Shown here in pieces: positions 12,382 to 62,790 of a stretch of 64,000 nt of DNA. This stretch comes from Lepidodermella squamata. Lineage: Eukaryota > Animalia > Gastrotricha. The DNA is taken from positions 4,526,001 to 4,590,000 of the forward strand of contig JBLDXI010000015.1 in the NCBI GenBank assembly GCA_047495785.1, read 5' to 3'. The notes under the pieces are model-generated. The model saw only the letters and a list, made by a program, of their open reading frames with translations. It made no database searches and was not told the DNA's origin. The position numbers were made by a program, and so were the translations under genes. Each line of letters starts with the position of its first letter. The first letter of the stretch is position 1.

Positions 12382-13652
12382 TTACCAGCCCCTTGCCGGT
12401 ATCCATTTGTCAACACAGCGCACATCATCGTCCGTTATGTAATAAACCGAGTGTTTGTCGGCAGAAGCACAGCAGTGATACGGTTGGATCAACAACGTAG
12501 ACCCGATGGGGTACTTGCTGAAATCCAGCGGCTCGCTTGCTTGCTGGCGAGCTCTTATGATGCCCACCTCCTGAGTGACTCGCACAAGCACAATCTCGGG
12601 ATGACCAGCCACGCGCGCTGATAACCTCGGAACTGTTATTCCTTCGTTGTTTTGCTCTTCAATCCTGCCCAGGTCGTGCGACAGCGCCGTGAAGCCTGCG
12701 TCTATCAACATGTGGCCTTTTGATGGGTAATGGCCGACTACGCGCGCAAGAACCGCACACGCAATGTTGCTCTCATCACAAGCCCCGATGCCATTCTGCT
12801 GCGTGTCACAAAACGAGTAGGCGCCCGGATGCAGCTCGGTGATGCCCTCCGGAATACTAAACTCACACGACGTATAAGAAAAACACGATGGCGTCGCTCC
12901 GATGCCTACAGCCAGGTTAGCAAGGCCAATTTTCTTGTTAAGCTCCGCTAACCGCGAACCGGTCACACGCCCGATTTCAACAGCCTCGCCGGAGTTTTTC
13001 ACGTAATACGCGTTACCGTCGTGAGCGTAAAGACCGTGCAGAACAGTTGCCGGGCCTTTGGCTATTCTGTGGGCTAACTCTACTGTGCTTTGCGCATCAA
13101 ACATGACCCCGCCACGCCCGTAGCCACAGTCAATTTTAAGGTAGACCGACCACTTTTTCGATGCATTTGGTGGCGGGCTCTTCTCCAAAATTTCCAACCC
13201 AGCAGAACTATCCACAAACACGTGAATGTTGACATTGAGCGGCGCGCTCATGAGCGCATGCAGCCTTGCAATTCAAAAAAATTAAAAGTGACAAGAAACG
13301 TGTTCATAATGTAAAGGCACCTGTCAATGCGCGTTTTATCTACGGCATAATGTGCGAACAAAATGTCTGTGAAGCCGTTGTTCGCTAACAATTCGGCCTC
13401 GGCAAGTGTTGAAACAGTAACTGGTCTATTCTCGACGCCATCCGTCATCATGCGAGCTACCTCACTGAATAAAACAAGCTGAATTTCATTGCGGTTTTTT
13501 GCAAGCTCGACCTACACGCATTTGTGTGTTTTCATGTGAGGACGTAAAACAACGTTGCGGGCCCGGCAGTACTCCAGCATTTTCCGACAGTTCTCCTGAA
13601 CACGTGCTCGGTTAACAACGAAGCACGGCGTAGGTAAATCGCTCAACAACAT
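12382..13652 (-). CDS. D-serine dehydratase / D-threonine aldolase-like PLP enzyme (fold type III), 3 exons
   Basis: MLLSDLPTPCFVV...LRPHMKTHK (PLP Lys), STLAEAE, KIDCGYGRGG, LYAHDGNAY, GATPS, ELHPGAYSFCD, IDAGFTALS, PYHCC (Zn ligands). Confidence 0.88.
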
Positions 13653-36900: not shown

Positions 36901-37545
36901 TCAACAGATTCAGATACAACGAGTTTTGGTGACGCAGAGACATCGCTCATCTTCGAGGATAATTCACAGTGCTCCAATTCATCGCTCCATGGATACTGAT
37001 GAAGGCGCAAAGCAGCGCGGGAAACATTAACGGTATCATTGTCAGGATAGAGGCAGACGTTATACGCATTCTGAGACTGCAATAATGTAATAGACGAGAT
37101 GCAAATAGTCAGGAAAGTTTAATTTTAAATTACCGTTATTTCAATGACTTTCGCTGAGACAAAGGTCTTTCCATCGTCAACAAAAGAAGCTCTCTTTTCG
37201 AACCAATTAGGCGGTGGTTTGATCAACACTTCGCTTCCAACACGGACGTTTGCATGGGTAGGGGCCGAGTCTTGAACGAGCACAGGAGGGAATGATGACG
37301 AACAGTCTATGGTCAAGAAATGATCGCTAGCTGCGACGTTATCAGCGCCATCGGATTCTAACTTGACGACAACCGATGAAAATTCTGACGCAGAATCGAT
37401 CACACCAGGTCGAAAACACCCTATTTAACGATACTATTCTTATGAAAAATATAGACCTTACTTCCACACACTTACCATCTCTGACTTTAGCAAGGACTCT
37501 TGTACCGATCCAATCAGCCAAATTAAGTTTTTCACCACCTGACAT
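33970..37545 (-). CDS. CIC: Capicua HMG-box repressor, long form
   Basis: HMG box [10 protein letters not shown]|[10 protein letters not shown]...[10 protein letters not shown]...[10 protein letters not shown]; C1 domain RRELVLQLF...[14 protein letters not shown]; CIC-L N-terminal block [43 protein letters not shown]. Confidence 0.95.
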
Positions 37546-38921: not shown

Positions 38922-39156
38922 TTATTCAGAATCCACGGAGTCTGTTGGCTCTTTGTGTTCACAATTATCATTAGGGCCGTCCCCGCTAGGCGTGGGAGGA
39001 GGTTGAAGCTCATCATCATAACCATAATTAGGCACGAAGTGATTGTCATTACTACGATCAACATCGCTAATCACATCTTCATTAACCTTTACAACGTTGG
39101 TAGATTCTGTAGTATCACAAGCATCTTTCTCATCTCTTTCTGGTTCGTCTGGTTCC

Positions 39157-39204
<48 letters not shown>

Positions 39205-42200
39205 ACTTTAGCAGATTGCGGTTCGCCGAACTCATCATCAGAAGAATCGCGCTCTGTGATTCGTGTTTCCTCAGGATCAGTCATTCCTTGTAATGGAGAT
39301 TCGTTGCTTGGCCGTGGCGGCGAGGGTGGATCCAGTTGTTCCTGCCGACTGTCGCCAGCAGTCGTGCTGATATGCTCCGAGTTAGCATTTGTCATTGACA
39401 AATGATGGGAGAAGTCCATTTTTAAATTGATCTTTTGTTGAGCAGCCGAAATGCCTCTCTGAAAGGATCCATTTGAGCTATTCGTTTGGTGGGGGTTGGA
39501 CGCGACTGTTTTCTGAGACAGAACTTCTTGAAGCTGCTGTCTCAGAGACGGCGCTTGAGCAGTTATACTTCGGAACTCAGTTGGATTTGCAGTAGCCAAA
39601 GAGCTAATACATTCGGACAGCACAGGAACGAGTGATTTTGTTGCCGCCAACTGAGAATGAGTCAACGAAGCTCTGGCGAAGAGTCTAAGGGCAACTTCCA
39701 ACAGCTCAATTTCTGGATAAGTAAAACGTATCTCATCAAGACGAGTAAAAAAAACAAAGCAGAAAAGCTTACTGTTTTTAGATGCGGATGAAGACAAAAA
39801 GTCGATTATTGCACGAATGAGAGAAACGGCTGCGGTTAATATGTTGAGCGACGGGACAACTTTTCCCGTCGGTCCAGTACCCAGAACAATAGCACAGACA
39901 TTATGCATTGATGCTGAAACAACGGCGGCAATCAGATCAGCAGCAAACGGAGCACCACCGCGAGGCATTGAGCTAAGATCGATGCCGACTACGAGGCGCC
40001 GCAAGGCTGCAATTGTCGATAAACATTCATTCGGGTTGTTGCAAGTTAGGCACCGGTTGATAATAGTTGTAGACATTGATTGCAACTGTTCGAACTGTGT
40101 TTCCGAGCACTTGGAGTATCCCGCCGGACAAGGCGCGGACAGAGGCACCAAAAAGCAGTCAATTAAAATGATAGCACTCGCAGCAGATGTGATTTGAGAA
40201 GTGTTTATCAAGGTGTTGAGGGTTTGCTCAACGAATCTCCAAATCATTATTCCTGTCAGCGGGGACGGAGTCTCGTCGCTGCTGTGTTCCGAAATAGTTG
40301 AAACCAATCGAGAAACAGTAGATGACAAGCCCGGCACTACGTTCTTCGGAAAGTCTGCATGAAACGCGGCGGCTTGAATTGCGCGAGACATCAAAGCGAA
40401 AATGGACGGTGTCGTTGTGGGGTGGCACTGAACCAGAGAAGGCAGCGAGCCAAGCAGTTCCAAAACAGAAGCACCTAAACTACCCATTTCACCTGGGTTG
40501 AGCATTGACGGATTTTGATGTGGGGACAACACACGATGAGCAATAGCCAGCAAGACACGCTCTGCAACTACAACATCACCAGAAAACGGGGCATTCGTTT
40601 GCTGGTGCTGAAAAGTAGACGGTGACATGTCGGTTTTAGATCCAACAAGAGTTAGACCTAAAAGAGAGGGCGATGCAGTCATACTTCCCGGAGTTGCCGA
40701 AATGCTTGAAAAATTCGGGTGGCGATTGTAGCAGACGACCAAACTTTTAGAAATAGCAGTGGCAAGGCCAACAACGGAAGGCTGTAGCTTTTGAGTCAAC
40801 TCTCGGACGAGAAGCAGTCGGTAAGTGATTTGAAGCAGTTCTCGAACAACAACAAAATCTTCAGCGAATCGGCTAGCGGCCCAACTGCTAGAAAACAAGC
40901 GAGTCAGCGCACGGAGGCAAGCAATCAAGGTTGGTGGAGGGTCGATATTGAGCCGTTCGCACAGAGTACCAGCACAAGTACCAAGAACCAACAACAATGA
41001 TGAATCAGGCGGAGTTGGAGCACTAGAACCATCCGGTAGAGGGGAGGAAGATGAAGCGGCATTGCTGCTGATGAGCCATAGAGATGCCGCTTGGACAACA
41101 GCAGGAAAAGCCGCGATGCACAGTCGACGGGCATCTGGTAGGTCTAGATTCTCCGTAAGATGCGATAAACTCAGTTGAGATGCTTTAGGCGCAGCTGCGT
41201 TATCGACATGTTGAACAGCCGACGCACCAACAAATGCAAGCAACGCGTAGTCGCGAAGAACGTGAAGCCACAGCGGGCCTAACAGCTCCAAATTGGGCGT
41301 GACAAGACCAACCAGGCTTTCGCCAGCATTTGTGGCACCTTCATCATTCGAATCGACATCAGCCGAATTACTTGGCAAAGAACCGAGTCGCTGCTGCTCT
41401 CGGCTATCGGCTTCGACGTAAACTTCTGCCCATGCCCTTAACACTCCAAACATTTCAGCGGCTTGAGTGTATCCGACCGGAATGGTTTGTTTGCCGCCTT
41501 GGCTGCCCTGACTTTGCTCCAACCTGTTCAGCATCCCGACCAGTAAAATGTGAATTCTCATTAAATCGGCGGGTTCACGTGTAATTCCACTCGCCAACCA
41601 TGCTGAACAAACATCGCAAGCATCCGCGGTTATGTAAGGTGGTGCATCGGCAGCAAAGGCTGGTCTGAGCGACGCACCCATTTGAGCCTGATACTGCTCT
41701 AAAAGCGACGATCCAGCCGGCAACTCAGGATCCTGTGACTCAGCAAAGTGACAAATCATGGATCGCATGGCAGCGAGACCGCCAAGACGCACGTTCAGGC
41801 ACGGATGAGTCGCAGCCAATGAAACAAGGCGAACAATGTCCGGCAAGTGAAGCACCAACCAGCAATTTCCACCGGCAGCTCTCGCTAAATTCAGATCGAA
41901 ATGACGCGAATCGCCGCTGGCATGACAGTAATCGATTAATCGAGTTAAACAATTTACTGCAAACACGCGGCTTCTCCATCTCGGTAAGAGTGGTGGATTC
42001 GGGTCTTCAACTATTACAGGGCCAAAACGAGCCCCTTCCTCGCCCTCATCTTCATCCTCATCATCGTCATCTTCATCCGCTAAGCCACCTTTCGATTTTT
42101 TCGTTTTAGAGCCAGAAGCTTTTTGCTTATTTCCACCTTGAGACGATGACGCATTTCCAGCCCCAGGGCCCTGAGTGTTGCTTTCGTTCGAAGTTTTGCT

Positions 42201-45200
42201 CAAAACATCTCGAATAAGAAGCAACCACACCGATAACCGAGCAGTTCCAATTGACTGCAACAAACTTATCAGCGCTTCGTGAATATCACTCCTTAGTTGC
42301 GCATCGGTTTCGACGTCGAGTAACGAAAATAACTGACACTCCAGTTCGAGTTTCCCGCTATCCCCGGATTGGCGAATCGCATGTTCGATCAAATCAAGAG
42401 GCTCGCGTTGAGCTAGCTGCCTCAAACACCCAGCCGCCGCCCGGCGTACAACAACAAGTGGCGACGATTTGATAGTAACTGCAGAGCACGAGCTCCAGTC
42501 GTCCAAAGTATCGACTTGCTGCTGCGTTAACAGCAAAATCTCGAACAATTTTGGCACCAAAGTGAGTAGTGATACATGACGCGGGGCGTACAAATGCAAC
42601 TGCTGGTAGCAGGCAAGTGCTTCAGCTTGAGCATAAGCAGTTTCGGGTGATAGCTTTGCGCCGCGATCGGTCGCCATCAGAGCAGATAAAGCGGTTAGAA
42701 TGCATGACCTCGCTTCGTCCATCACACTGTTATTGGCAGCTAGCTCGGGACCGAGGGTGGTAATGATCGCATTAAGGCAGCGAGCGGCAAGTTGTAGTAG
42801 ATGAGAACTGCCTTGAACTGTGTTTGCTGTGCCAAGGGCGTGAAGTAGGACCGAGACGATCAAGGTGACTAAAGATTCGGCGTAGGACCGAACTAAAGGA
42901 CCATTTGCGTCCAGAGTAACGGCCAAAGCATGCAGAGCCGCTGCCTGAACGGATGTGGCGGTGTGATCTTGGGCCAAGCCCAACAATAACCCGATGCAGT
43001 GCTGCAAAGCTGGAGGCGATAACACTTGTCCACTCATATGATTGGCCCCGCATTGGCACAAAATGGCTCCGAGAGCCAGAGACTGACAGATCCTGGTGTT
43101 CATATCTCTACTCGACCGTAATCGGTCGGTGGTGGATTGGCGAAGGTCAGCCGCATATCTAGCATCGCCGACAGCTGCAGCCAAGCGGCCTAGGGCTTCA
43201 GTTCCAGCTGATCTGATCAACGGAATGCGTGATTCGATGGCCTCGTGAATGAGCGTTGTCACGCTTGTCAACCATTCGGGAGAGTACGGTGTGCTGTTTG
43301 TCGCCGTATTTCGGAAATACAACAACAGAACAGCCAACATGTTACATTGAACAGCTTGTTGCCGCAATTGGCCGGCTTTAGCTTGACGTATTGCTTCGCC
43401 GAAGTGGCTGACAATTTGAAGTCGATGTTTAGCTGGCAGATTTGGCAAAATCACTGCTAATAACCGAGCTGCGTTGCTCACAAGATTCGTTGATCGGGGA
43501 ACTTGGCCCACTTGCCAAACCGCTGTTACCAGGGATGGCGGGTCAATTGATTGGGAAATCAGTAAAGAAGGATCATGTTCAAGCGCCAAAGGAAAATCGA
43601 GCACCATTGTTGAATTAGGACCCAACGTGAGCAACAAATTGATATGATGTTGGCCCAAAGTTTGAAATAGTAAGGGAGCGGCCGACGCTGTGTTGTAACC
43701 AACAGGGTCGACTAGGGTCAAATCGGCAACGATTTCACGTAACAGTCCCGCGGGACTGCTGACAAGTCCGGAAACAGCGGTAGACGGTGCGCCATTTGTT
43801 GGCGATTGCAGTACAGTGTTGAGCAACGAGTACAAGCGGCTCCGAAACGCAGCAGCTGATATTTTGACTGCATTACCGTGAGTTTTGCTGATATTAGGTA
43901 GCTGGTCGACGAAAATAACGGCGCGATGTACAAGAGCGAGCAGCTTAAGGTACAAATCAGTCGAGGTGTTGCCGATGGAGGTTTGGGTCGGGTCGGCCGA
44001 AGTTGGGAAAATGTAGGGCCAACGAATAGCCAAGATCTCAAGAACCTGAAGTACGACAGTTCGAGCTTCCATCATAACTTGCCAAGTGAAGGCATTCCCG
44101 TTGGCTTGGTTTGAGGTCTCATCATTCGCACCGCCATTCAAAGCCGAGGTTCTCGGGAAAACGCGAAGGCAAAGAGCTAACAAGCGAGGCAGTAATGGCC
44201 TTACGGAAAGAGGACTGTGTCGAACGATTGCTCCTAAAATCAGGTAAGCAACACTCGCCCTCGCTTCGGATAATCGCAGAGTCAATGGCACACAGTGCAA
44301 CATGTGAACGGCTAGATCGAACATACGTCTAATCGCACTAGGCGACAAACCGCTCGTGGCAACTGACCCAACATCGCCGATAGAAACGCCTCGAGGAGCT
44401 TCGTCAGGCGGCGCAGCTGCGGCGATCAAAGTTGCGATTGCTGTTCCGAACCCGAAAATAACTTCCGGGGTTAGTTGTACATCATGCGAGTCGTGAAGAA
44501 CAGCGGCACATCTGTCGAGCAGTGGTGCAAGAGCTGGCGGGTATGCGAGTCCGATAGATCTCAAACAAAGGCACGCAGCACTTCGAACCGAATTGGAGCT
44601 ATGAGCCAGAGAAGCGAAGAGAGCTTCCAGAATAGGTGACTGCTTGTTGTTTAGCGAAAATAGCGCTGGATTTAGAACAATTGCGTCGCCTACAAGCGTA
44701 GTCAGGCTGCTCATGTGAAATAGGGAGCACACAACTGTGTGGACCAAATGCTGCTCTTGCTCTTGATGTCTTCTAGCCGCTGGAACTTCGGTTGCAGGCG
44801 CGTTTGCGCCGCTGTTAGTTTGAGCCGGCAAGGAAGCGGCGTTGCTAGTCGGCGAAACAACCATAACAATAGCAGAGTCTACCATCGAGTCACCTTGAGA
44901 CGCGGCGCCGTCAGACGAAATTTCATTTTTTGCGATACTGATGTGCTTTAGAATGTAGTTTGATAAATGTAGTAGAGCTGAAATCTGCGCTGGCTCACTC
45001 AGCATCAGCCCGACAGTAGATGAAAGAATATGCAATATGCATCGACGAACAACCAGCAAATCCACGTGCTGCTGATGAGCACTTTCGCCTCCGTTCAATA
45101 CGGAGCGCGTTGCAGAGGCACAAATCATATTGACATGATCCAAAAATTGAGGAAGGTGTTGGCCAAGCCAACGAGACCCGAGTAGCCGAATGAATTCAAC

Positions 45201-46342
45201 GTAAGCGTGAGCGATCTCATACCGCAGTTCGTGCGGAACGGAGACGGGCCTGGCAGTTATCAAATCAATAGGTCTAAGCGCATTTGCAGCAGAGGATGCG
45301 GTACCACGCGTGAACATGTTTCCAAATACAATCAGAGCATCGTCGGGGGCCAGCAACGGATTTTTTGAAGCATTAGCAGGTGACTTGGAGAATGATGAAA
45401 TTGGCTGAACACCGGCTTCCTTAATCAAGTAAGCTATTAAATCAGCTGTTGATCTCTGCAAGTCGGCGAATCCGCAGCACAAGCTTCCAACGGTACCCCC
45501 TGCGGTTGTACCCGGCTCTAAAATCACGACTCGGCTACATTGCTGAACAATAGCGTCCAACTCTGTGTTAGCACCCTGCGGAATATACGGCAGTCCTTCG
45601 GCCATCGATTTCAAACATGCTATCGATGCCAGTCTAACAGGCACAACTCTATCACCAAGACCAGACCGCGCCAACTTGAGAATGTCGCGCTGAACATTGG
45701 CAGCCACGTTGCCGAGTCCGTTTATAATTTTTCCAAACGCGATGAGGCTTTCACAGCGGGTTTGAGACTCGGCGGTTTTGTAACCTTTGATCAAATACGT
45801 TACTGCTAAATCATATGATCGGCCAACCATGCGACCAAGTCGTTGACAAATGAGGCCAATGCAACATATCGCGGCGCTAATAAAAAATAAAGGTATAACG
45901 GTGAGTTTATGCGGATGTAGCTGAGCTTACAGTCTTCTCGAGATGAAAGCAGCTGAACTGTCGTTAGTTTTTATGATATCTGTTAGTCGATTCATCACAT
46001 CAAACAGCTTGGTGGTATCTCCCACCAAAAATATCGAGGTCAGACATGTTGCCAATGTGAATCTGGCAGTAAAGCCATTTACGGTAAGTAGCTGACTCAA
46101 CAGCTGCTCCAGTATTATGTCTTGCTTGTCCTTTATATCCGCCTAATCATAACAATAATAACAAGCTTAACTTGTTGTCGAAATTGACTGCTATATATTA
46201 CCTTTCTGGCAGCAGAAAGAACTTTTTCAAGGAAACGTAACCACTCATAGACGAACACACTCTTCTTATGATCCGGCAGCTTCTCCAGCACTTCGATATT
46301 CAGACACAAGCTGTGTGCGAGCTCCATATTCAAGGAATTCAT
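38922..46342 (-). CDS. HEATR5: HEAT repeat-containing protein 5 (HEATR5A/B, Laa1-like)
   Basis: [10 protein letters not shown]...[78 protein letters not shown]; two short 5' exons and a probable 60-nt in-frame intron 39713-39772. Confidence 0.93.
39150..39204 (-). repeat. Coding hexamer microsatellite encoding (EP)n in the HEATR5 tail
   Basis: About 9 TGGTTC units on +; translates as [18 protein letters not shown] on the minus strand. Confidence 0.9.
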
Positions 46343-47209: not shown

Positions 47210-47540
47210 TAATATAGATGAAAACCGTTGCCCGTTGCTATCTCCTACGTCATTCAGCGTGAATCTTTGGTCTTGAAGAAATCCGTGCATATTTTACAGA
47301 GCGCTAATAGTTAGTTTGTTTAAAGGTCATTAGGTGACACCTTGAGGTCTTTCGCTGTTGAACATCGGCTAATTTTCGCACTTGCTTCACTGTTTCAAGT
47401 TCTTATGCGTATTGCACTAGCCACGTTACACTAAAAGCATAAACTTGCTTCTTCGCACAGTAGCTTATTGCCGTTCGTTTCAAGAACTGTCACTGTAATT
47501 ATTTCTGCTCACTGTAGTGTATGATATATTTGGCATTTTC

Positions 47541-47813
47541 ATGATTCGACGACCTCTTAAGGCAATCGAGTTGAAAAAAGAAGACATCAGGCAAGAACTT
47601 CAAGAGTTGGAACAACGTGTTTTGCGTGCTCCGGCGACTGAAATTAAAACAGAAGAAACTGCGAAGAAGCCATCAGCAGTCGGAACTCCCGATACCCCTG
47701 CTGAGCTTCGAACCCCAGGTGCAGATACCATCGAGATTCGTCAACGCATTGGCTATCAAACTCCAGCTCAGACAAGTACCCCAGCTGACGGCCTTTTCTA
47801 CACTCCGCGTTGA
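47541..47813 (+). CDS. CDC26: Anaphase-promoting complex subunit CDC26 (APC12)
   Basis: 90 aa; MIRRPLKAIELKKEDIRQE matches the CDC26 N-terminal MLRRxPxxLELKxDDI pattern, plus the IRQRIGY motif. Confidence 0.75.
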   Translation: MIRRPLKAIELKKEDIRQELQELEQRVLRAPATEIKTEETAKKPSAVGTPDTPAELRTPGADTIEIRQRIGYQTPAQTSTPADGLFYTPR

Positions 47814-47816
47814 ATC

Positions 47817-50336
47817 ATGTCAGATAAACCGTCTACCAGCTCAAACCCTGCTCTTTTTAGCTTTGAGAATGAATCAGATAACAATTTTATCGGTGCTTTA
47901 CCAGACCCAGGTCAGCTGGACTCCGCTGCTAGCTCTGCCCCTGCTCGGCGTAGCCAAAATCTTCCAGAGGAAGCAACTCGTTTGTATGGAGAGGCTGCTG
48001 TCACTTATGCGAGAGGCAGTCGCGACGAAGCAAGGGTTTTATGCCTAGAAGTCGTTAAACTTGCTCCATCTTACGCCCCTGCTTACCAACTTCTTGCCAG
48101 TATTTGTGAGGATGAATCAAATATGGAGGGATATTTGCAGTACCAGTTAGTAGCCGCCCATCTGACGCCTGATGATTATGATCTATGGCTGCATTTAGCG
48201 GATATTGCGCTGGACAAAGCCAAAGCTGAAATGGCAAATGCGGAGTTACGTGAGAAACATTTTCAGCTGGCTGCGTTCTGCCTTCGTCGCGCTACTAAAG
48301 TCGTGCCTGCCACTTTCCCAAAATTGAGCATCTATGAGCGCTATCTGCTTACTCTTGAGAACAAACCCGTGAAGCAATATCAGGTATTGCAGCAAATATT
48401 GGGAGATTGTTACCCTCAAATGTTTCATGCCGAGTACATGGCAGCGTTCAGAAGTTATGCCAATCACTCTGCTAAAGCTGGAGATCATGCATCGGCCGTT
48501 AATGCCATGTTGAGTGCTTCGTTTTATTGTCCTGAGCATTTTCAAGCCAGCGACTACGACTTGGTTCTACAAAGTGGCTTTGCTGCGAAAATGTGGTGCC
48601 ATGTCATCGTTTTCTATAGTCGCTTGAACATGGTCCGGCTTGTCTCGTCGGAAACTCGCCTGCCGATTAATGTGAGGTCAAGCCCAAACGTTGATGGTGA
48701 TGATACGAAACAACTGGACGATTGGTTGAAGAAAACTGCCCTCGGCGTTGAAGTTGATGTAAATCGTATGAATGACTACCTTATCAGCAGATTTGCCGCT
48801 GCTCTACTCTATATTTCTTGCCCCTTGAAAGTGGTTCAGCCTCTTGCCATGCTGTTCTCCAAACGTGTTTTGCCGCAGATTGATAATCCCGCAAGGTTCA
48901 ACGATTATTTGATCGTTTCCAGAGCCGCCGCTACTGTAAATACGTTATATCATTCTTTGGTCTGCTCGCTGATCGAACCTCTTCTTGGCACTTCAAAGAC
49001 TTCCCTTGAAGCTTCGAATCCAGATGTCGCAACTGCTATTGAAATCAATTTATGGTACGCTAATGCAAAAACTGCAATGGGTGATCTGAATGGGGCTGCT
49101 CATTTTTACAAAAAAATTCTCGAAGCAGCCCCGCAACACATTCATGTACGTCAAGCGTTGGCTGATGTTTTCTCGAAGCTCGATAATCGAGCTGCTGCGA
49201 TCTCGGTGCTGACGGAGAAATTCCCGCTCGACAATCTGACAGTTGACGAGTTTGCGCTTCGTCTCGCACAGTGTTCCGTTTTATCTCAGTGTTCAGGTTG
49301 CGAGGACGCATTTTTGCAATCATCAACTCACCTTCTGTTCGGCGACAAAAGTGACGAAGTCGATGATAAAACGTTGACTGTTTTCGCGAATGTGCACACT
49401 GCGCGTTTGTTTTGCTCACCAGCCGGCTCTCAAAGCGACGATTTGGACTTCTTTTGTCCTCCTCTTCACACCGCTACCTTACAAATGCCGATCAGGCGCT
49501 TGACTCTTCCCCACAGTTGGTTTCCGCAAATTTGGGAGGTGTTCGAGCGGTTATGCAATATTCACTTTGATCGAGGCGAGTACATGCCTCTTTTTCGATT
49601 GCTGATTTTCTGTTTCTTTGCTAACCCAATGCATGAGTTTGCAATTGAAAAAGTAAGGTACATCCTTCTAGTCGTTTGTTTCGCCATGCGGAAGTGGGAA
49701 ATAATCAATACCTGTGTGCGATCGATCATCCGAACCGGTGTCATGAAAGGTTTGACCGAATTTCCGAATTCCGTTTGGAATATGTTGGCGATGTCCTCTT
49801 CACATCTGGACGATATGCGAGCTGTCACGCGAAGCATTACTAGAATTATCGGTAAAAAGCAAACGCTCGAATGTGACGCGATTTACTACATGCTAGGCCA
49901 TGCTGCTTTTGTCCGCGGAAATTACCGAGTTGCTCTTCGCGAATACGGAAATTTGATCAAGCGCCGACCGAGTGATCCTATGTGCTACTTGATGGCCGGC
50001 ATGTGTTTTATCCAACTATCTGCCAATAAATTTCGCAACGGCAGGCCACTTCTCGTCTACCAGGCCATGTGCTGCTTCGAGCGATATCGTGAATATCGAG
50101 GTGACTGTCAGGAAGTTTTTCTCAACATCGGACGCGCCATGCATCACATTGGTTTTACATACATTGCCGCTGATTATTACCGCCGGTGTCTTGAAATGCC
50201 CCCGGTTTGTGGACCACAAGGTGGTACCTACGACTTGCGATCGGAGGCTGCGTTCAATTTGTCTCAAATTTGCCGGCGTAGTGGTTCAGCTACTGCGGCT
50301 CGTTATTTCCTGTCTAAATATTGCGTAGTAGAATAA
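47817..50336 (+). CDS. GTF3C3: General transcription factor IIIC subunit 3 (TFIIIC102/Tfc4), intronless
   Basis: TPR protein: LYGEAAVTYARG...LEVVKLAP..AYQLLA..YQLVAAHLTP; C-terminus QEVFLNIGRAMHHIG...YDLRSEAAFNLSQI...KYCVVE. Confidence 0.92.
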   Translation: MSDKPSTSSNPALFSFENESDNNFIGALPDPGQLDSAASSAPARRSQNLPEEATRLYGEAAVTYARGSRDEARVLCLEVVKLAPSYAPAYQLLASICEDESNMEGYLQYQLVAAHLTPDDYDLWLHLADIALDKAKAEMANAELREKHFQLAAFCLRRATKVVPATFPKLSIYERYLLTLENKPVKQYQVLQQILGDCYPQMFHAEYMAAFRSYANHSAKAGDHASAVNAMLSASFYCPEHFQASDYDLVLQSGFAAKMWCHVIVFYSRLNMVRLVSSETRLPINVRSSPNVDGDDTKQLDDWLKKTALGVEVDVNRMNDYLISRFAAALLYISCPLKVVQPLAMLFSKRVLPQIDNPARFNDYLIVSRAAATVNTLYHSLVCSLIEPLLGTSKTSLEASNPDVATAIEINLWYANAKTAMGDLNGAAHFYKKILEAAPQHIHVRQALADVFSKLDNRAAAISVLTEKFPLDNLTVDEFALRLAQCSVLSQCSGCEDAFLQSSTHLLFGDKSDEVDDKTLTVFANVHTARLFCSPAGSQSDDLDFFCPPLHTATLQMPIRRLTLPHSWFPQIWEVFERLCNIHFDRGEYMPLFRLLIFCFFANPMHEFAIEKVRYILLVVCFAMRKWEIINTCVRSIIRTGVMKGLTEFPNSVWNMLAMSSSHLDDMRAVTRSITRIIGKKQTLECDAIYYMLGHAAFVRGNYRVALREYGNLIKRRPSDPMCYLMAGMCFIQLSANKFRNGRPLLVYQAMCCFERYREYRGDCQEVFLNIGRAMHHIGFTYIAADYYRRCLEMPPVCGPQGGTYDLRSEAAFNLSQICRRSGSATAARYFLSKYCVVE

Positions 50337-50382
50337 ATTTCATACAACTATTAATTTTGATTTATATAGGACCTTATTAAAA

Positions 50383-50802
50383 CTGTCTTCCAATATCGTT
50401 CAATACGTTCTATTGCGAAAGGACTTGATTACTTTACCCAACTGGTCTTTTGGATCTGTCGTAGCTCAAGGTGAGGAACTTGACGATGAAAAGGGCTGGA
50501 ACATAATTTCTTCAATATTTATAGGTTGCCACGCCTGTGTAGCTGCTATTCATTTGTTCGGCAACTCTCCGACGACTCAGGCTTACTTGGAAAGTGAGTC
50601 ACTTGGTCGTATGAGAAAAGTTGTTCTTGAAGTAAACGACGAATCCCATTTACTGCAGTTACGAGATAAACTAGCCGCTGCTAACATCGATTTTCATCTT
50701 TGGGTCGAACAACCGGAAAACTTCCCGACTTGCATTGCTTTGCGCCCCTACGTTAAAGAGGAACTTGGTCAATTGTTGCGTGGATTGAAACTTTATAAAT
50801 AA
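50383..50802 (+). CDS. PTRHD1: PTH2-family peptidyl-tRNA hydrolase domain protein PTRHD1; no N-terminal ATG, CTG 50383 is the candidate start
   Basis: [11 protein letters not shown]...WSFGSVVAQ|GCHAC...MRKVVLEV...[24 protein letters not shown]; 54-nt intron 50471-50524. Confidence 0.88.
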
Positions 50803-52556
50803 TGAGATACCTATCGCGCGTTTTACTATCTGGTCGGCGCTGGCTCAGTGCCCAGCCCGCATCTTCCAAGGCGAGTTCGAACAAACAAGCCAATCAGCCA
50901 GCCGATAAGAAATATAATATGCCCGAATACCGGCCGCTTTACTTGGACCACCAAGCTACTACCCCGGTCGATCCTCGCGTCTTGGATGCGATGTTGCCTT
51001 TCATGGTCGGCGAATACGGCAACCCTCACAGCCGAACTCACGCATATGGTTGGGAAACAGAGGCTGCAGTGGAGAAAGCCCGTCGTCAAGTTGCTTCGGT
51101 CATCAACGCTGATCCGCGTGAAATCGTTTTCACAAGTGGTGCCACCGAATCAAACAATGTAATTGCATTACAGTATTCATTTTACATGATATAAGTAATT
51201 GAATTCGATTGTAGCAAACAATTTTTATACAATAATCGATATACCTAAACGGTTAATTTTGTGTCTCGAAAACATGCTTATCACCGTTTTTCTGTTTTAA
51301 TTCAGATGGCCATTAAAGGCGTTGCTCGTTTCTACAAGCAAAAGCGGAATCACATCATAACAGTGCAGACCGAGCACAAGTGCGTTCTGGATTCTTGTCG
51401 AGTGCTAGAAGCCGAGGGTATAAAGGTATTGATTGGTTTTCATTTTTTCGTGCTATGAAATATCGATTGAATCTAATTTTATCCCGTCAGTAATGGAAAT
51501 GATCTCGCATCATAATTTTATCTTATATTGATATCTTTTTCATTAGTTGATATATTTTTGGATGCCTACCATGCGTCGATAATTTTATTCTCATTCCAGG
51601 TCACATACATGCCAGTGCAGAAGAATGGAGTGATAGATCTAGCTGAGCTCGAAAAAGCATTTACTCCTCAGACGGCGCTTGTTTCAGTCATGACCGTGAA
51701 TAATGAAATCGGCGTCGTTCAACCGATGGCCGAAATTGGTCGAATGTGCCGTAGCAAAGGCGCGTTTCTTCACACCGATGCCGCCCAGGCTTTCGGAAAA
51801 ATCCCGATCGACGTGAACAAGCTTAACGTTGATTTAATGTCGATCTCCGGCCACAAAATCTACGGCCCTAAAGGCGTCGGAGCGCTGTATGTTCGACGCA
51901 GGCCTCGAGTTCGGCTGGAGCCACTGCAGTCGGGCGGCGGGCAAGAGCGAGGTCTCAGATCTGGGACTGTCCCAGCTCCGATCGTTGTCGGTCTTGGCGC
52001 CGCATCAGAACTGGCAATCAAAGAAATGGCATACGATAGTGCACATATCAATCGCCTGAGCGCAATGTTATGCAAAGGCATCGAAAGCCTAGAGCATGTT
52101 ATTCGCAATGGCGATCCTGTCCACGGATATCCGGGCTGTGTTAACTATTCGTTTGCCTACATCGAAGGCGAGTCGATGCTTATGGCGCTGAAAGACATTG
52201 CCCTTTCGTCTGGCTCTGCATGCACTTCAGCCAGTCTTGAGCCCTCATATGTGTTACGCGTAAGTTAGACTATCAGTTTCGACACTAAATTTCAAAAATC
52301 TGAAGAAAAAAAATAGAAATTTTCTCAATTCAGTTTCTAAAATTGACCTATGATCTCTTAGGCTGTTGGTGCCGAAGAGGACGTGGCGCACTCCAGTATT
52401 CGGTTCGGTATCGGCCGTTTCACAACAGAGGCTGAAATTCACTACACGATTGATCGTCTGAGACGTCACGTAACTCGTTTACGCGAATTATCTCCTCTAT
52501 GGGAAATGGTTCAAGAAGGCATAGACATCAAGTCCGTTAAATGGACGCAGCATTAA
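50802..52556 (+). CDS. NFS1: Mitochondrial cysteine desulfurase
   Basis: Arg/Ser-rich targeting peptide [87 protein letters not shown]-stop. Confidence 0.97.
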
Positions 52557-52992
52557 GCCAGAATTCGGCGAAAACCCCATATATTTTGCCAGCCTGATGA
52601 TAATAACAACCTAGTTGTTCTATTTCGCTGCTTAATCGATCGATTTCGGTCGTTTGTATACGTGGATCGCCGAGTAAAAAACTATCAACGTGTAAAGCCT
52701 TCCGTGCGTGATTGAATATTTACCTGCCCCACGCGCTCAACTCTGTTGATTTTTTGCGATGCGAGTGCCTCAAGCACGCGATTCATCTAAAACCTTTCTA
52801 GATTTCGCAGTATTGATTTTGTCTTGCCCCCCCCCCCCTAAAACAACGCGCTCGTGCTCCTACACGTGATTGCAGCGCGTATTCACAAGAGTTATCATTT
52901 TGCTGAACATAACTTTTATACTCTGTAGTTTTTTTTACGTTATCAATAATTAATTCATTAAAGTGCGTCGTTGAATTCACCTGATTGCTGCA

Positions 52993-54255: not shown

Positions 54256-55277
54256 TTGAAATTAAAGCCTGACTTTTCGAATGTTGCTATTTGAGTTATT
54301 TGTCGTGTTGCCCCGTGTCTTTCCTTTACGTAGCACAACATATGCTTTACCGAAGTTGAAATTGTTGTAGACTAGTCGTTGATATTACTCGTTGATTATT
54401 TTCTTATATCGGAAATCTGAACTTGACTGATGTTGTAACGTCATTTTCTTTCTCAAGGATTTCTCACGGTACTAATCGTAGCATCTTCTATTCTCAATTA
54501 AAGTCGACGTTGTTATCTCTCATCACATCCGCCGTGACTGCATATTTTTCTATTTCTGTTGACAAACATGACGAGTCTTTATTTCATTACATTTGATTGT
54601 GTCCCAGTTTTTTGACAATGTCTGGGGTATAACTTATTTTTGAAACTGTAAATACTGTACATAACCTGAGATAGCATTTTTGAAAAATAATAAATTGTCA
54701 TGCAGTATTGATTTGTTTTTTTCGCTGCTGAAAATTGGATCAGAGCCATTTTAGCATTTTTCGACGGGGATATAATATCGTATTTCGTCGAATCATGATG
54801 AATCATTGTAATTAAGGTACTCAAGATATTATCTGTGGATTATAAACGCTATAACCACAAGCTACTTCTCGATAGAATCGTTGCATAGATACTGCGCTAT
54901 CTGCAAAAAAGCCTGTGCGATCAATGAATGCATTACGCATCAATGAATTTACACGCGCCCTCGTGCCTACTCCTCGTGCGCATTTGTATCAAATAGTCAA
55001 ATTACATCGAGGGGTGAAAATCTACGCCCGTTTTACCGGCATATGAGTTGTGTTCAATGGGAGATCTCAAGCACAGGTTCAATAATTCATAGCATCACTC
55101 TCATGCAGTATAGCTGGCACGTATAAGTATCTAAGAATTTTATAGCAGGTCAAGTTTACACGCCGCCCAAAACTATTGTATACATAACATTGTGGTTTTG
55201 CTATTTAAAATTACTTCATATTTTTTGCCGGTTTTTTAGATATTTTATTTCTCAGATATTTATTGGAGCTACACACG

Positions 55278-56842
55278 ATGGGTGGCGAGACCGTGGGTTC
55301 AGGTGGACCAAAAATGCGTAGCATCATGCCGCCATGGTGGAAATGGATCGTACTTTGCGCGACAGTCTACATGAGTCTTGTCTGCAATGGCTACGCTTAT
55401 TGCTTCGGCTTACTAAAAATTCAACTTCAGGAGGAATATCCTAACGTATCACCCTGGTCTGTCGCAATTATTGGCGGCCTTGTACCAGCGATTTATTTGT
55501 TTTTGGCGCCATTCGGCATAGCAATCAACGAATTTTTCGGCGCTAGAATAACAACGATAGTCGGCTCCATCATGTCTGCGACTTGTTTCTTTTTAAGCTG
55601 GCTGAACGGCGGCGTGCTATTTAGAGCTGGTTTTGTAGTCGACCTGTTATGCCTCGGCGTTGGTCAAGGTCTGGCGTTTTCACTGCTATACGGGCCATGC
55701 GTAGCAGTACTACCTGGCTATTTCGGGTCAGACCAGTTATCATTAGCGACCGGGATAACGAACGCGGGCGCTTCTGCTGGTGTGATCATCTACGGATTCA
55801 TCTCCTACCCCCTGTTTGGCCACTTCGGTTGGCGGGGTACGATGCTGTTCTATTCTTTGTTGTCTCTTCACGGGGTTTTGGCCGGCTTGGCTTTTACCAA
55901 ATTGGTCCCAGTTAAAGAGCCGAAACCAGTCAAAAAGCAGGATGAACTCGAGCTGACTCCTACTGATTTGACCACGGAAGCTTTACTGGCCGATGAGAGC
56001 ACGACCGCCCCGAGTGTGGCTGTGATTCAGCCTCCTAAACGAACTTTCCTAACGGTTTTACGGAAATATTTCGACCCGAAACTGATTTGCCAAGGGCCAT
56101 TTCTCTGCCTGCTTGGATCTGCTGGTTTTTCGATTATAGGCTACTTCGTGCCAACTTTGCTGCTGCCAGGTCAAACTAAGCGGCCCGAGTTCAATGTGCA
56201 CCCGATAATTCAGAAAAACATCATGGTTGTGTTTGGTGTTTGCAACTTGATATCTCGCGTGCTCGTCGGGCGAATCGGCGATTACGGCCACAAATCGTTC
56301 TTCTGCACTTCGTTTTTCATGTTCGTTGGCGGCTTGATCGTCTCAGCCACCGCGTGCCTCGTCTTTCCTCACATTATGCAGTTCGGCAATGTTGCCTTCC
56401 TGGCTTTTGTTATCACATACGCATTTGCAGCTGGTAATTTTCAAAAAATATTTTTTTTTAAATTTGGAAATTTAATTTATTCATTTGTTCAGCTCCTGTG
56501 ATAGCCATGAGGTCATTGCTGGCTATTGACCTCTTCGGAAAATCGAACGCTAGTGCCTCGTTTGGCTGGTTTTTATGCGCACAAGGCTCTTTGCAAATGA
56601 TTGGATACGTTTTGCCATGTAAGAACCAGTTTGATCCACCTTGAATTGTTCAAATTTTTTTTTCATTTTTATCAGCTTGGTTTGATACTATTGGACCTTT
56701 ATTCGCGTATCTCTTCACTGCGTGCATGTTTCTTGGAGCTGCTGGAAGTTGTTCATTAACAATACGGCTATTCCTTTCCGAGCGGCGGAAGAAAATTGCG
56801 GCGATGAAAGCTGAAAAAGCTGCGAAAACTGAAACGAGTTGA
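55278..56842 (+). CDS. SLC16/monocarboxylate transporter-like MFS protein, copy 1
   Basis: PPWWKWIVL, FGARITTI, GVGQGLA...YF...LATGI, FGWRGTML, SRVLVGRIGD, DLFGKSNASASFGW; two 3' introns. Confidence 0.85.
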
Positions 56843-58600: not shown

Positions 58601-60097
58601 ATGCCCGCGCAAACTGGCTTGCCGCCTTGGTGGCGGTGGGTGGTTCTAGCTGCAACTTTTTACATGAACGCCATCGTCAACGGTTACGCGTATTGCTTTG
58701 GTCTCTTGAAGATTCCGCTCGAGCAAGAATATCCAGAGGTTAGCCAGGCCCTACTAGCGTCGATAGGCGGCGCAATCAGTTCGATTTACATGTTTTTGGC
58801 ACCTCTGGCCATCGCTGTTCAAGAGCATTACGGCGCGCGGCTAACAACAATTGCGGCGTCATGTTTCTCTGCATTTTGTTTCATTATTTGCTGGTTAAAT
58901 GGAGCTTACTTCAAGGGCGGTTTCATCGTCGACTTATTGACCCTGGGCGTCGGACAAGGAATCGCCTTAGGTTTCCTATATGGGCCTAGCGTCGCCTTAC
59001 TGCCGAATTATTTCCCTCTCGATCAAATAGCTTTTGCTGCGGGTGCTACTAATGCTGGAACCTCTTTCGGAATCATTGTTTACGGTTTCATAACAAACCC
59101 TTTATTTTCTATCTATGGTTGGCGGGGCACTATGTTGTTCTACGCTGCTTTCGCCCTACAAGGTGTTGTAGCCGGTCTTGCTTTCATGACGATGAAATTG
59201 CCTGAGCCACCGAAACTCCCCGAGAAACTCGAAATGGCTGAGAAAACCGATGATGAAGAAGCTGCTAAAACCTTGATTCAACCTGTTAAGGAGGAACCCC
59301 CAAAAATGACGTTTTTACAACGTTTGCGGCGATTTTTCGACATCAAGCTTTTCATGCAATGGCCCTTTATAATGATGTTGTCTGCTGCTGCTTTTTCAAT
59401 CATCGGCTACTTCGTGCCTACTTTGCTAGTGCCCGGTCAGGCTAAGAAACCCGAGTATGAGGTGAATCCGTTCGTTGCCCGGTATATCATGGTCATTTTC
59501 GGCGTGTTAAACTTGACGGGTCGCATTATTATGGGCAAGCTGGGCGATCTCGGGTTCAAATACGCGATTTTTACGTCGTACTCATTGTACATCGGTTCGC
59601 TAGTCATTTCAGCTGCCACTTTGCTCATTTTCCCACACCTCATGTTCCTCGGCACTGTCGCTTTCATCGCTTTCGTTGTGATTTACGGCTTCGCCGCAGG
59701 TATGGCTTATTTTTAAAAAAATGTCCCTTGAAATTTTCAAGTTTCAAATTTACTAGCCCCGATTATAACAATGCGCTCAGTTTTAACGATAAATCTCTTC
59801 GGCAAGGCAAATGCCAGTGCTGCATACGGCTGGTTCATCGGTGCTCAAGGCTCACTTCAAATGATCGGCTTTATTTTCCCCGGTAAATTACCAAAAAGCG
59901 AGTTTTTTCAGCAATAACTTTGCTCTCTTATTTTAGCATGGTTGAATGCAAACATGGGGCCGTTGTATGCCTATGCTTTCGCCGCTAGTGCCTTTCTGAT
60001 CGCTGCGGTTTCGTGCGCAGTTACTTACAAGCCGTTCTTCGAAACTCGGAGAAAACAAATCGAAGAAGTCGCGCGAAGCAACGAAGCCAAATCATGA
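58601..60097 (+). CDS. SLC16/monocarboxylate transporter-like MFS protein, copy 2
   Basis: Collinear paralog of copy 1 (PPWWRWVVL, YGWRGTML, GRIIMGKLGD); same two introns. Confidence 0.85.
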
Positions 60098-61201: not shown

Positions 61202-62790
61202 ATGGCACATGAGCATCATCACCACCATCACCACCATCACCAACCGGTGCAGATGCGAAGCATCATGCCGCCTTGGTGGCGATGGGTGGTTTTAGTTGCA
61301 TGTCTTTACATGAATCTCGTCGTAAATGGTAAGGTATCCCTGTTATTTCCTTGAAATCGAATCAGCATACAATTCTAGGTTATACCTACTGCTTCGGCCT
61401 GGTGAAAATACCTCTGATGACCGAGTATCCTGAAGTTTCGGCAGCAACTTTGGCCATTGTGGGGGGCATTGTTCCAACGATTTACATGTTCATAGCGCCA
61501 GTCGCCATTGCTATCACTGAATTCGTCGGTCCGAGACTTACCACGATATGCGCATCATCTCTCAGTGCCCTGTGTTTCGTTTTAACTTGGGCGAATGGTG
61601 CTTTCCTACATTGGGGATTTTATTTCGACCTCATGTGCCTTGGCATCGGCCAAGGTTTAGCTTTTGGTGGTCTTTACGGACCAAGTGTCGCAGTGCTGCC
61701 AACTTATTTTTCTCTAGATCAATTAGCTTTCGCCGCAGGGCTTGCCAATGCTGGTTCTTCTATCGGTGTCATTATCTACGGTTTTATTTCTAATCCTTTA
61801 TTTGAGATTTTCGGCTGGCGAGGAACAATGTTATTTTATGCTGGGATCTCTCTTCAAGGCGTCCTCGCTGGTTTGGCTTTCATGAAAATGGTCCCTGTGA
61901 AACAGCAGCCTTGCCCGTCTAGCCTACAACTTGCCGAACTAGGCAAAGACGAACCAGATTATACGGAAACTTTAGTTGAAGATGCCCAGAAACAAGAGCC
62001 GGAGGTTCCGAAGAAGGAATTTCTGCCGATACTGAAACGATATTTCGATTTAAACATGTTCAAACAATGGCCATTTGTTTGCGTAATTGCATCGGCTGGA
62101 CTTGCCATCGTCGGTAAGAATAAGATAACCCGGCAACTTAGCTAATTAATGCTATTCCAATATATTCTAGGGTACTTTGTTCCGACTCTTCTCCTACCTG
62201 GTCACGCGAAAGATCCTAAGAATGGAGTTCACAAATTTGTCGCGCCATATATAATGAGCATTTTCGGCATAATGAATCTCATAGGGCGAATAGTCTTGGG
62301 CAAAGTCGGAGATCTGGGCAACCGCTACGCCATATTTACGCCATACAGCTTGTACAACGCATCACTGATACTAGGAGCGATATGTTTTCTTGTTCTGCCG
62401 CATGTTATGTTTCTCGGAACGATTTCTTTCGTCACTTTCGCTGTACTTTACGGCTTCTCATGTGCACCGATTATCATCATGCGATCACTTCTAACAACGA
62501 CTTTATTTGGGAAAAAGAACGCAAGCGCTTCGTATGGCTGGTTTTTGTGTGCACAAGGCGGCTTGCAGATGTTCGGCTACGTCTTACCAGGTGGGTGGAT
62601 TTATTAGAGTTTTGTTTGAATTTATTAAAACTTCTCTACAGCCTTGCTGGAAGAAAAGCTTGGGTCGTCTTGGGCTTACTCTTTTGCTGCTCTCATGTTC
62701 CTGCTCTCATCACTTGCCTGTAGCTCTACTTTCAAACCATATTTCGAAGCAAGGAGAAAGCAACTGGAGGAAATGAAAACGAAAAGCTAG
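61202..62790 (+). CDS. SLC16/monocarboxylate transporter-like MFS protein, copy 3, with N-terminal His9
   Basis: MAHE-H9-QPVQMRSIMPPWWRWVVL; introns 61330-61378, 62114-62170, 62591-62641; stop TAG 62788-62790. Confidence 0.85.

Follow-up and report, generated by a model that had tools for sequence, protein, structure and literature searches.

Leaky scanning past a weak first start codon is familiar from viruses: in the Sendai virus P/C mRNA an ACG-initiated C′ frame lies before the P AUG, and plant viruses are known whose first cistrons start at CUG or AUU. Termination-reinitiation is used by calicivirus VP1/VP2, with a termination upstream ribosomal binding site (TURBS), and by M1/BM2 of influenza B segment 7, and UAAUG-type overlaps of stop and start codon serve reinitiation in both. 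Among animals, the Drosophila dicistronic loci, mammalian MOCS2 and SNURF-SNRPN are cellular mRNAs that encode two separate proteins. Leaky-scanning bicistrons have so far been documented systematically in green algae and plants, and the green-algal cases provide experimental precedent for a weak start of the first open reading frame (ORF1), depletion of ATGs before the second (ORF2) and, in some, an overlapping stop and start codon (PMC11291117). Here we analyse the PTRHD1–NFS1 gene pair in a 64,000-nt stretch (referred to as the window) of contig JBLDXI010000015.1 from Lepidodermella squamata. The original prediction for this pair was that one mRNA makes both proteins, with PTRHD1 starting at a non-AUG codon and NFS1 reached by leaky scanning. 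This is supported by conserved linkage, a conserved CTG, a purge of ATGs from the PTRHD1 ORF, the position of the initiator methionine in orthologues and a cDNA contig from a relative. We favour a conserved leaky-scanning bicistron, CUG-initiated PTRHD1 followed by NFS1, and give this reading a probability of about 0.68. No paper linking the two genes in a bicistron was found in the literature searched.

Anatomy and conservation of the PTRHD1–NFS1 pair

Coordinates were read directly from the sequence and from scripted translations, and ORF identities were assigned with Pfam. Every position given for the TAATG overlap, the upstream TAG, the CTG, the 54-nt intron and the single internal ATG was confirmed (Table 1). 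The first ORF comprises 121 codons, and its second exon matches the PTH2 domain (PF01981, E=1.2e-15). In a protein collection search, PTRHD1 orthologues were 50–60% identical to it, and the family-invariant PTRHD1 residues, including RPY, are retained. The second ORF matches Aminotran_5 (PF00266, E=5e-21 and E=1.5e-54), and the spliced NFS1 is intact, with four exons and 443 amino acids. The translation of its third exon shows SGHK and SSGSACTS, which we take to be the lysine motif for pyridoxal phosphate and the catalytic-cysteine motif of the NFS1/IscS class V cysteine desulfurases. Between the upstream TAG and the conserved IVQY of PTRHD1 there is no in-frame ATG, and the spliced 378 nt from 50370 to 50801 contain only the ATG at 50611.

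The closest PTRHD1 matches among unnamed environmental sequences in a large protein collection gave two relatives, so that three species could be compared. Contigs L001, L002, L005 and L006 represent the first relative; they are metagenome contigs of 13–22 kb that differ from each other by few bases, and their PTRHD1 protein is 81% identical to that of the window. L003 (Logan assembly, run ERR1712137) and L004 (JGI 3300019039) are the same sequence and represent the second relative, with 72% identity. Both relatives originate from marine samples; the sample label of L001 may be that of a polar seawater study. A Tara Oceans origin for L003 follows by inference, as ERR1712117, 20 accession numbers from its run, is described as a Tara Oceans metatranscriptome (bioRxiv 10.64898/2026.07.25.740690). 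Both the PTRHD1–NFS1 linkage and the CTG start, for which a check in related species had been proposed, are kept in the two relatives. The gap from the PTRHD1 stop to the NFS1 ATG is −1 nt in the window (TAATG), +2 nt in L001 (TAG-cg-ATG) and +4 nt in L003/L004 (TGA-taca-ATG), so near-zero spacing is kept in all three species; the overlap itself and the frame of ORF2 relative to ORF1 are not. The contigs of the first relative also keep the wider gene row, consisting of HEATR5 (reverse strand), a small ORF, GTF3C3, PTRHD1, NFS1 and calcipressin. JGI metagenome contigs were scanned for further clade members with a degenerate pattern specific to the PTRHD1 C-terminus of the clade and by alignment, and neither search found any; a protein search with NFS1 exon 1 returned only generic NFS1 fragments besides that of L001. 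Four other environmental PTRHD1 contigs (L007–L010) start at a normal ATG, with downstream sequence too short to judge linkage to NFS1.

The CTG proposed as the PTRHD1 start is found in all three species, with A at −3, 3–4 codons before IVQY and downstream of an in-frame stop. From the upstream gene, or from the mRNA 5′ end, to this CTG there is no ATG in any frame in any of the three. The codon aligns with the initiator methionine of PTRHD1 orthologues from molluscs, echinoderms, insects and amphibians, which follow the pattern M-[AT]-S-[IL]-VQY; amino-acid conservation begins at the CTG, and the frame upstream of it is not conserved. CTG makes up 21%, 8.5% and 7.7% of leucine codons across the three species, and finding three CTGs by chance under plain leucine coding has P ~0.0013, taken as the product of these shares with synonymous sites saturated. 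Six assemblies of the two relatives (four of the first, two of the second) read CTG, and a base error at C 50383 is therefore very unlikely. The original prediction had also described an A-rich context common to this CTG and to ATG starts elsewhere in the window; this holds only loosely, as the shared element is A or G at −3 and the contexts are otherwise unlike.

The PTRHD1 ORF is free of ATGs in all frames except for one invariant methionine codon (in RMRKVVLE), and this is the case in all three species. The remaining ATG has C at −3 and A at +4 throughout, and the NFS1 ATG has a purine at −3 (A, G and A), which confirms the earlier description of a weak internal and a better-placed downstream ATG in the window. 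The purge was tested by resampling synonymous codons for the actual PTRHD1 proteins with each genome's own codon usage. A single ATG was observed where 4.35 were expected in the window (P=0.011), 5.26 in L001 (P=0.0015) and 3.46 in L003 (P=0.032). Only 0.4% of 378-nt coding windows in this stretch carry one ATG or none, with a mean of 6.8; by contrast, the first 378 nt of NFS1 hold 7–8. The signature is visible at single codons. A NAY codon that precedes a G yields an ATG in the +1 frame when its last base is T. Codons in this position are T-ending in 0 of 5 cases in the window, 0 of 4 in L001 and 0 of 3 in the third species, all 12 ending in C, against background T-ending frequencies for such pairs of 55% (window), 76% (L001) and 92% (L004 NFS1); treating species as independent, the product of the three probabilities is ~3e-8. 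Before other bases, NAY codons within PTRHD1 end in T at normal rates, and no A-ending codon in PTRHD1 precedes a TGx codon. The purge is present in both halves of the ORF, as would be expected if ribosomes bound for NFS1 must scan it entire.

PTRHD1 is under purifying selection as strong as that on NFS1. Pairwise dN (the nonsynonymous divergence) among the three species is 0.17–0.22 for PTRHD1, with dS (the synonymous divergence) saturated, and 0.20–0.22 for NFS1; a lack of such constraint had been named in advance as a potential refutation. The PTRHD1 ORF and intron are intact across species, and the intron occupies the same position in the window (54 nt) and in L001 (59 nt). NFS1 begins with a basic, almost acid-free N-terminus in all three. 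Two of its introns are common to the window and L001, as is that of PTRHD1; the first (51159–51305, 147 nt, after ...ATESNN) is found in the window only and is missing from L001 10640–10650, which shows that an intron was gained or lost in the clade. Automatic gene callers placed the start of PTRHD1 in L001 (10001–10288) at an intron-derived ATG (MYSG..., P0001) and in L003 (109–408) at an internal TTG read as methionine (MGSVVAQ..., P0002). Standard annotation thus truncates PTRHD1 because the gene has no AUG.

The candidate bicistronic mRNA and rival routes to NFS1

Transcript evidence comes from the second relative. The spliced cDNA contig L004 covers both ORFs, and L003/L004 are intron-free at both sites shared by the window and L001 (one in PTRHD1, one in NFS1) and at the NFS1 site occupied only in the window. 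The 5′ start of L004 is ACATGGGG, the 3′-terminal eight bases of the SMARTer / Iso-Seq 5′ primer, the sequence of which is printed in bioRxiv 10.1101/2021.03.17.435796. Low-input eukaryotic RNA from Tara was converted with the oligo-dT SMARTer Ultra Low kit, and in SMARTer template-switching libraries the adapter sequence stays at insert starts (Alberti et al., PMC5538240). Because the contig opens with this adapter, its start is most likely that of a capped mRNA, 44 nt upstream of the CTG. In the leader there is no natural ATG, and a TAA lies in frame 8 codons ahead of the CTG, which excludes both an AUG-donating leader and a fusion to the upstream gene in that species.

The first 29 nt of the L004 leader end in TTTGAG, and an exon-like boundary (GAG|AACTT) lies 15 nt before the CTG, equivalent to the AG-ending tract at 50360–50369 of the window. 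This 29-nt segment might be a spliced leader, or an ordinary 5′ untranslated region that starts inside the upstream gene. Its sequence was not found in the window, at the other loci or in the literature searched; Rfam reported no spliced-leader RNA, small nuclear RNA or ribosomal RNA in the whole 64-kb window, and an alignment of the intergenic regions of the three species was uninformative on the leader. The space available upstream is short, with 46 nt from the GTF3C3 stop to the CTG in the window, 101 nt in L001 (9757–9863) and possibly 32 nt in L004 (9–55). The 5′ end of the PTRHD1–NFS1 mRNA could come from a promoter inside the upstream gene or from spliced-leader trans-splicing at the 50360–50369 tract.

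In the reading we favour, PTRHD1 and NFS1 would be expressed from one capped, spliced bicistronic mRNA, in which the ancestral PTRHD1 AUG was replaced in this lineage by CUG with A at −3. Of the scanning 43S complexes, a minority would start at this CUG with initiator Met-tRNA and make full-length PTRHD1, and the majority would pass. Selection would have stripped the PTRHD1 ORF of ATGs in three frames, sparing one indispensable methionine codon in a weak context, and the bypassing ribosomes would scan ~420 nt to the first well-placed AUG, with a purine at −3, which begins the mitochondrial presequence of NFS1. NFS1 would then be the major product and PTRHD1 the minor one, with the CUG setting the ratio. 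We infer the CUG initiation, the leaky-scanning route to NFS1 and the product ratio from this arrangement. The spacing of −1 to +4 nt may also let terminating ribosomes, including any that began at the internal methionine, reinitiate on NFS1 as a secondary contribution. Folding of the PTRHD1–NFS1 junction compared with shuffled sequences gave no stable or conserved structure in the three species (z = +0.3 to +2.0), and an unstructured junction fits free scanning.

Several points weigh against this reading. The transcript evidence comes from a related species only, as contigs assembled from short reads; L003 and L004 may stem from one and the same run, and overlapping transcripts could have been joined in them. 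A single adapter junction defines the 5′ end, and an internal template switch could have produced that junction. At the start codon, the +4 base is T or A where G would be favourable, and no conserved hairpin that could raise non-AUG initiation follows the CTG in the three species. The three species are related, so the per-species P values of the purge test are not fully independent, though synonymous sites are saturated. The 46-nt gap after GTF3C3 leaves little for a promoter or trans-splice site of a PTRHD1–NFS1 mRNA. Finally, an ATTAAA lies 21 nt ahead of the NFS1 ATG in L001, where the PTRHD1 stop, TAG, itself contains an AG, and in L004 an AG lies 9 nt ahead of that ATG; in those species the RNA might instead be processed at these sites into monocistronic forms.

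These sites also speak for a rival view, in which the two genes are separate, overlapping units. NFS1 would be made mostly from a monocistronic mRNA that begins, or acquires its leader by trans-splicing, within the 3′ portion of PTRHD1. The contig that covers both ORFs would then be a PTRHD1 transcript extended at its 3′ end, a precursor yet to be processed, or two transcripts fused in assembly. Contigs built from short reads are no proof that a single molecule carries the two ORFs. The genome is extremely compact, the spacings on either side are operon-like (46 nt from GTF3C3 to PTRHD1 and, in L001, 95 nt from NFS1 to calcipressin), AG-ending AT-rich tracts lie shortly upstream of start codons, and an AG precedes the NFS1 ATG by 4 nt in L001 as well as by 9 nt in L004. 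In the window itself, however, AG is absent within 43 nt of the NFS1 ATG, the region contains neither AATAAA nor ATTAAA, and a PTRHD1 poly(A) site would have to sit inside the NFS1 coding sequence. Nor would the purge, which includes the 5′ half of PTRHD1, have any rationale if ribosomes bound for NFS1 never crossed that ORF, and the replacement of AUG by CUG is left unexplained. We consider separate units unlikely, while taking them seriously. Also unlikely is termination-reinitiation as the main route, in which ribosomes that began at the CUG or at the AUG inside PTRHD1 terminate at its stop, which overlaps or adjoins the NFS1 AUG, and their 40S subunits are retained and restart. Higher reinitiation rates accompany spacers of a few bases (PMC11291117), and gaps of −1, +2 and +4 nt fall in the range of most efficient reinitiation. 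Of the earlier suggestion that TAATG serves reinitiation, the tight spacing (at most 4 nt in three species) stands, but the overlap is not kept, the frame of ORF2 relative to ORF1 differs among species, and there is neither conserved structure nor, in the last 120 nt of any species, the TURBS motif 1 sequence TGGGA, which is complementary to 18S rRNA. Reinitiation after a 120-codon ORF is normally inefficient without a tether, NFS1 output would be capped by an inefficient CUG start, and the purge of out-of-frame ATGs along the whole ORF and the loss of the AUG would go unexplained. Since the overlap is not conserved, termination-reinitiation is not needed and would be at most auxiliary.

Two further accounts do without a CUG start. 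The first has an upstream exon or spliced leader supply an in-frame AUG, through a leader ending in AT joined to G50370. An acceptor-like site (atttatatag|G) does lie 13 nt before the CTG with G50370 in the right phase, and the 29-nt leader of L004 could be a spliced leader, but in that leader there is no natural ATG, its end is GAG where this model needs AT, and it carries the in-frame TAA. The two candidate acceptors of L001 are followed by A and T, neither in the required phase; a CTG conserved exactly at the orthologous methionine position would be a coincidence, and an efficient AUG would block scanning to NFS1, contradicting the purge. This alternative, raised with the original prediction, is disfavoured and now seems very improbable. 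The second account, that the PTRHD1 ORF is no longer a protein gene but a decaying relic or a long regulatory upstream ORF, accords with the lost AUG and with a position where an upstream ORF of an NFS1 leader would lie. Given a dN equal to that of NFS1 with saturated dS, an ORF and intron intact in three species, a detectable PTH2 domain and the retained family-invariant residues, we find it scarcely credible. A frameshift or read-through fusion of PTRHD1 and NFS1 was rejected because their relative frames differ among species. A GTF3C3–PTRHD1 fusion by alternative splicing was also rejected; the obvious donor (GT at 50325) joins out of frame, as read by eye, and the L004 leader has its in-frame stop. 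The leaky-scanning bicistron therefore remains our preferred reading.

Neighbouring genes and other tight pairs in the window

The window genome is compact and intron-poor, with a GC content of ~44%. The features of the locus and of the two genes before it are collected in Table 1.

Table 1. Features of the PTRHD1–NFS1 locus and of the two genes upstream (window coordinates)
Feature	Position	Strand	Remark
CDC26-like small ORF	47541–47813	+	90 amino acids; ends 3 nt before the GTF3C3-like ATG
GTF3C3 (TFIIIC102)-like tetratricopeptide-repeat (TPR) gene	47817–50336	+	single exon, 839 amino acids; matches 8clk_D, E=9e-51
In-frame stop TAG upstream of PTRHD1	50329–50331	+	within the end of the GTF3C3-like gene, other frame
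AATAAA	50332–50337	+	overlaps the GTF3C3-like stop codon (50334–50336); read by eye; putative poly(A) signal
AT-rich tract atttatatag, ending in AG	50360–50369	+	13 nt ahead of the CTG; may be a 3′ acceptor for splicing or trans-splicing, or promoter-proximal
CTG, proposed PTRHD1 initiation codon	50383–50385	+	A at −3, T at +4; context ttaaaaCTGtct
PTRHD1 exon 1, coding part from CTG	50383–50470	+	
PTRHD1 intron	50471–50524	+	54 nt, GTGAGG...TTATAG; excision restores the conserved family motif VVAQGCHA
PTRHD1 exon 2	50525–50802	+	includes stop TAA (50800–50802); carries the PTH2 domain
Sole ATG between 50370 and the NFS1 start	50611–50613	+	context ggtcgtATGaga, C at −3; methionine of RMRKVVLE
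TAATG stop/start overlap of PTRHD1 and NFS1	50800–50804	+	NFS1 ATG at 50802–50804
NFS1 exon 1	50802–51158	+	ATG with A at −3; basic, almost acid-free N-terminal presequence
NFS1 exon 2	51306–51425	+	preceding intron 51159–51305
NFS1 exon 3	51600–52259	+	Aminotran_5 core
NFS1 exon 4	52362–52556	+	stop TAA at 52554–52556

Immediately upstream, the CDC26-like ORF (MIRRPLKAIELKKEDI...RIGYQTP...) is conserved, and its gap to the GTF3C3 ATG is 3 nt in the window and 8 nt in L001 (6944–7227). Its own ATG has T at −3 in the window and in L001, there is no internal ATG, and the GTF3C3 ATG has A at −3. The Pfam match of the small ORF to CDC26 is sub-threshold (E=0.019 and 0.039), and the purge test has no power here, as at-risk dipeptides are nearly absent from the protein. 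In plants and green algae a conserved bicistron has CDC26 as its ORF1 (PMC11291117), and the CDC26-like ORF and GTF3C3 are probably a second leaky-scanning pair. If so, ORF2 would be the position of two of five adjacent same-strand genes, and leaky-scanning two-protein mRNAs might be a regular mode of expression in this fast-evolving holozoan lineage, the CUG of the PTRHD1–NFS1 pair being a fixed ratio-setter; we propose this tentatively and at somewhat less than even odds. A 7-codon upstream ORF lies before the CDC26-like ORF (47521–47544, ATG ATA TAT TTG GCA TTT TCA TGA), its TGA overlapping the CDC26-like ATG; it is not conserved in L001.

HEATR5 (38925–45830, reverse strand) is a single open frame of 2302 codons with a few short 5′ exons upstream. 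Its best named matches share only 34–37% identity with it and come from bivalves, fish, Trichuris and a copepod. A HEATR5 tree placed the clade of the window and L001 outside all the bilaterians sampled, as their sister group; the branch is long, which makes a long-branch artefact likely. HEATR5 and GTF3C3 are both clearly nearer to animal than to fungal proteins. The protein collection contains no close relative with annotation, and placements among appendicularians, nematodes, ctenophores or unicellular holozoans each lack support. On the other side of the pair, the spacer between NFS1 and the calcipressin-like gene measures 437 nt and contains a run of ~11 C (52830–52841); the same spacer is 95 nt in L001.

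Other tightly spaced ORFs in the window did not yield bicistrons. The pair at 61351/62149 was rejected, being one MFS gene with an in-frame stop. It is the third of three tandem MFS-transporter genes on the forward strand (55263–56501, 58601–59716 and 61351–62607), and the Pfam MFS_1 match runs across its in-frame TAA (62143–62145), for which a pseudogene, a very short intron or an assembly error are possible. The pair at 13251 was rejected as well, as it looks like two pieces of one D-serine-dehydratase-like gene (12382–13511, reverse strand). The Pfam match of this gene begins at profile position 88, and an 87-codon segment in another frame abuts it with an ATGA overlap, which is likely to reflect an unrecognised intron, a frameshift or a split gene. 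For the remaining tight pairs listed in the window scan no support as bicistrons was found. In two more ORFs, at 34275–35353 and 35583–37108 (reverse strand) and with no Pfam domain, the TGA of an upstream open segment overlaps the first ATG.

Comparison with known two-protein mRNAs

If the proposed arrangement holds, an essential mitochondrial iron–sulfur enzyme depends on ribosomes that scan ~420 nt of ATG-purged coding sequence, and the requirements of a downstream gene shape codon usage throughout the gene before it. Such an arrangement is rare in animal-like organisms. This natural example, conserved in three species, would make a clean system for studying CUG initiation and scanning processivity. 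Two rules enforced by gene finders, one protein per mRNA and a start at ATG, would both fail here, and PTRHD1 would be missed or truncated. In practical terms, the locus speaks for placing the two ORFs on a single transcript in annotation and for a search of this genome for small, ATG-depleted ORFs lying directly next to larger ones.

Of the described animal dicistronic genes, we know of none that combines a conserved non-AUG start of ORF1, a purge of ATGs across the whole ORF and a near-zero spacer, and PTRHD1–NFS1 is a different gene pair. The spliced-leader operons of nematodes, tunicates, rotifers and chaetognaths resemble this region in their same-strand rows, short spacers and acceptor-like sites before starts, a look that fits the GTF3C3-to-PTRHD1 and NFS1-to-calcipressin junctions. 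The PTRHD1–NFS1 junction differs in leaving no room for 3′ end formation together with an acceptor, and no spliced-leader gene or known leader was found by Rfam in the window, at the loci compared or in the literature searched. With calicivirus and influenza B reinitiation the locus shares the TAATG overlap in the window and spacers of at most 4 nt in the relatives; unlike them, it has no TURBS motif or conserved structure, does not keep the overlap, and bears a purge that points to scanning. Viral leaky scanning is closer in mechanism, as there too a near-cognate first start passes most ribosomes to a downstream AUG, with codon and context setting the ratio. The viral frames are usually overlapping or nested, whereas here two complete, conserved cellular enzymes would follow one another across ~420 nt of ATG-purged sequence.

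The green-algal and plant bicistrons (Chlamydomonas and Auxenochlorella loci; CDC26/TTM3) are the most similar in layout. In these, as in the arrangement proposed here, one capped mRNA bears a short ORF1 followed by a longer ORF2, the start of ORF1 is weak, few ATGs remain ahead of ORF2, the spacer is short, with stop and start overlapping in some cases, no IRES-like structure (internal ribosome entry site) is present, and the two proteins are unrelated and independently folded. Leaky-scanning bicistrons are now suggested in a compact holozoan genome. If this is true, the green-algal and plant mechanism reaches the animal side, CDC26 recurs there independently as ORF1, and a variant with a non-AUG ORF1 is added. 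PTRHD1–NFS1 departs from the green-algal and plant cases in that its ORF1 has no AUG and a conserved CUG in its place, a kind of start for which PMC11291117 has no term, in belonging to the animal side and not to Viridiplantae, and in the pair of genes that it joins.

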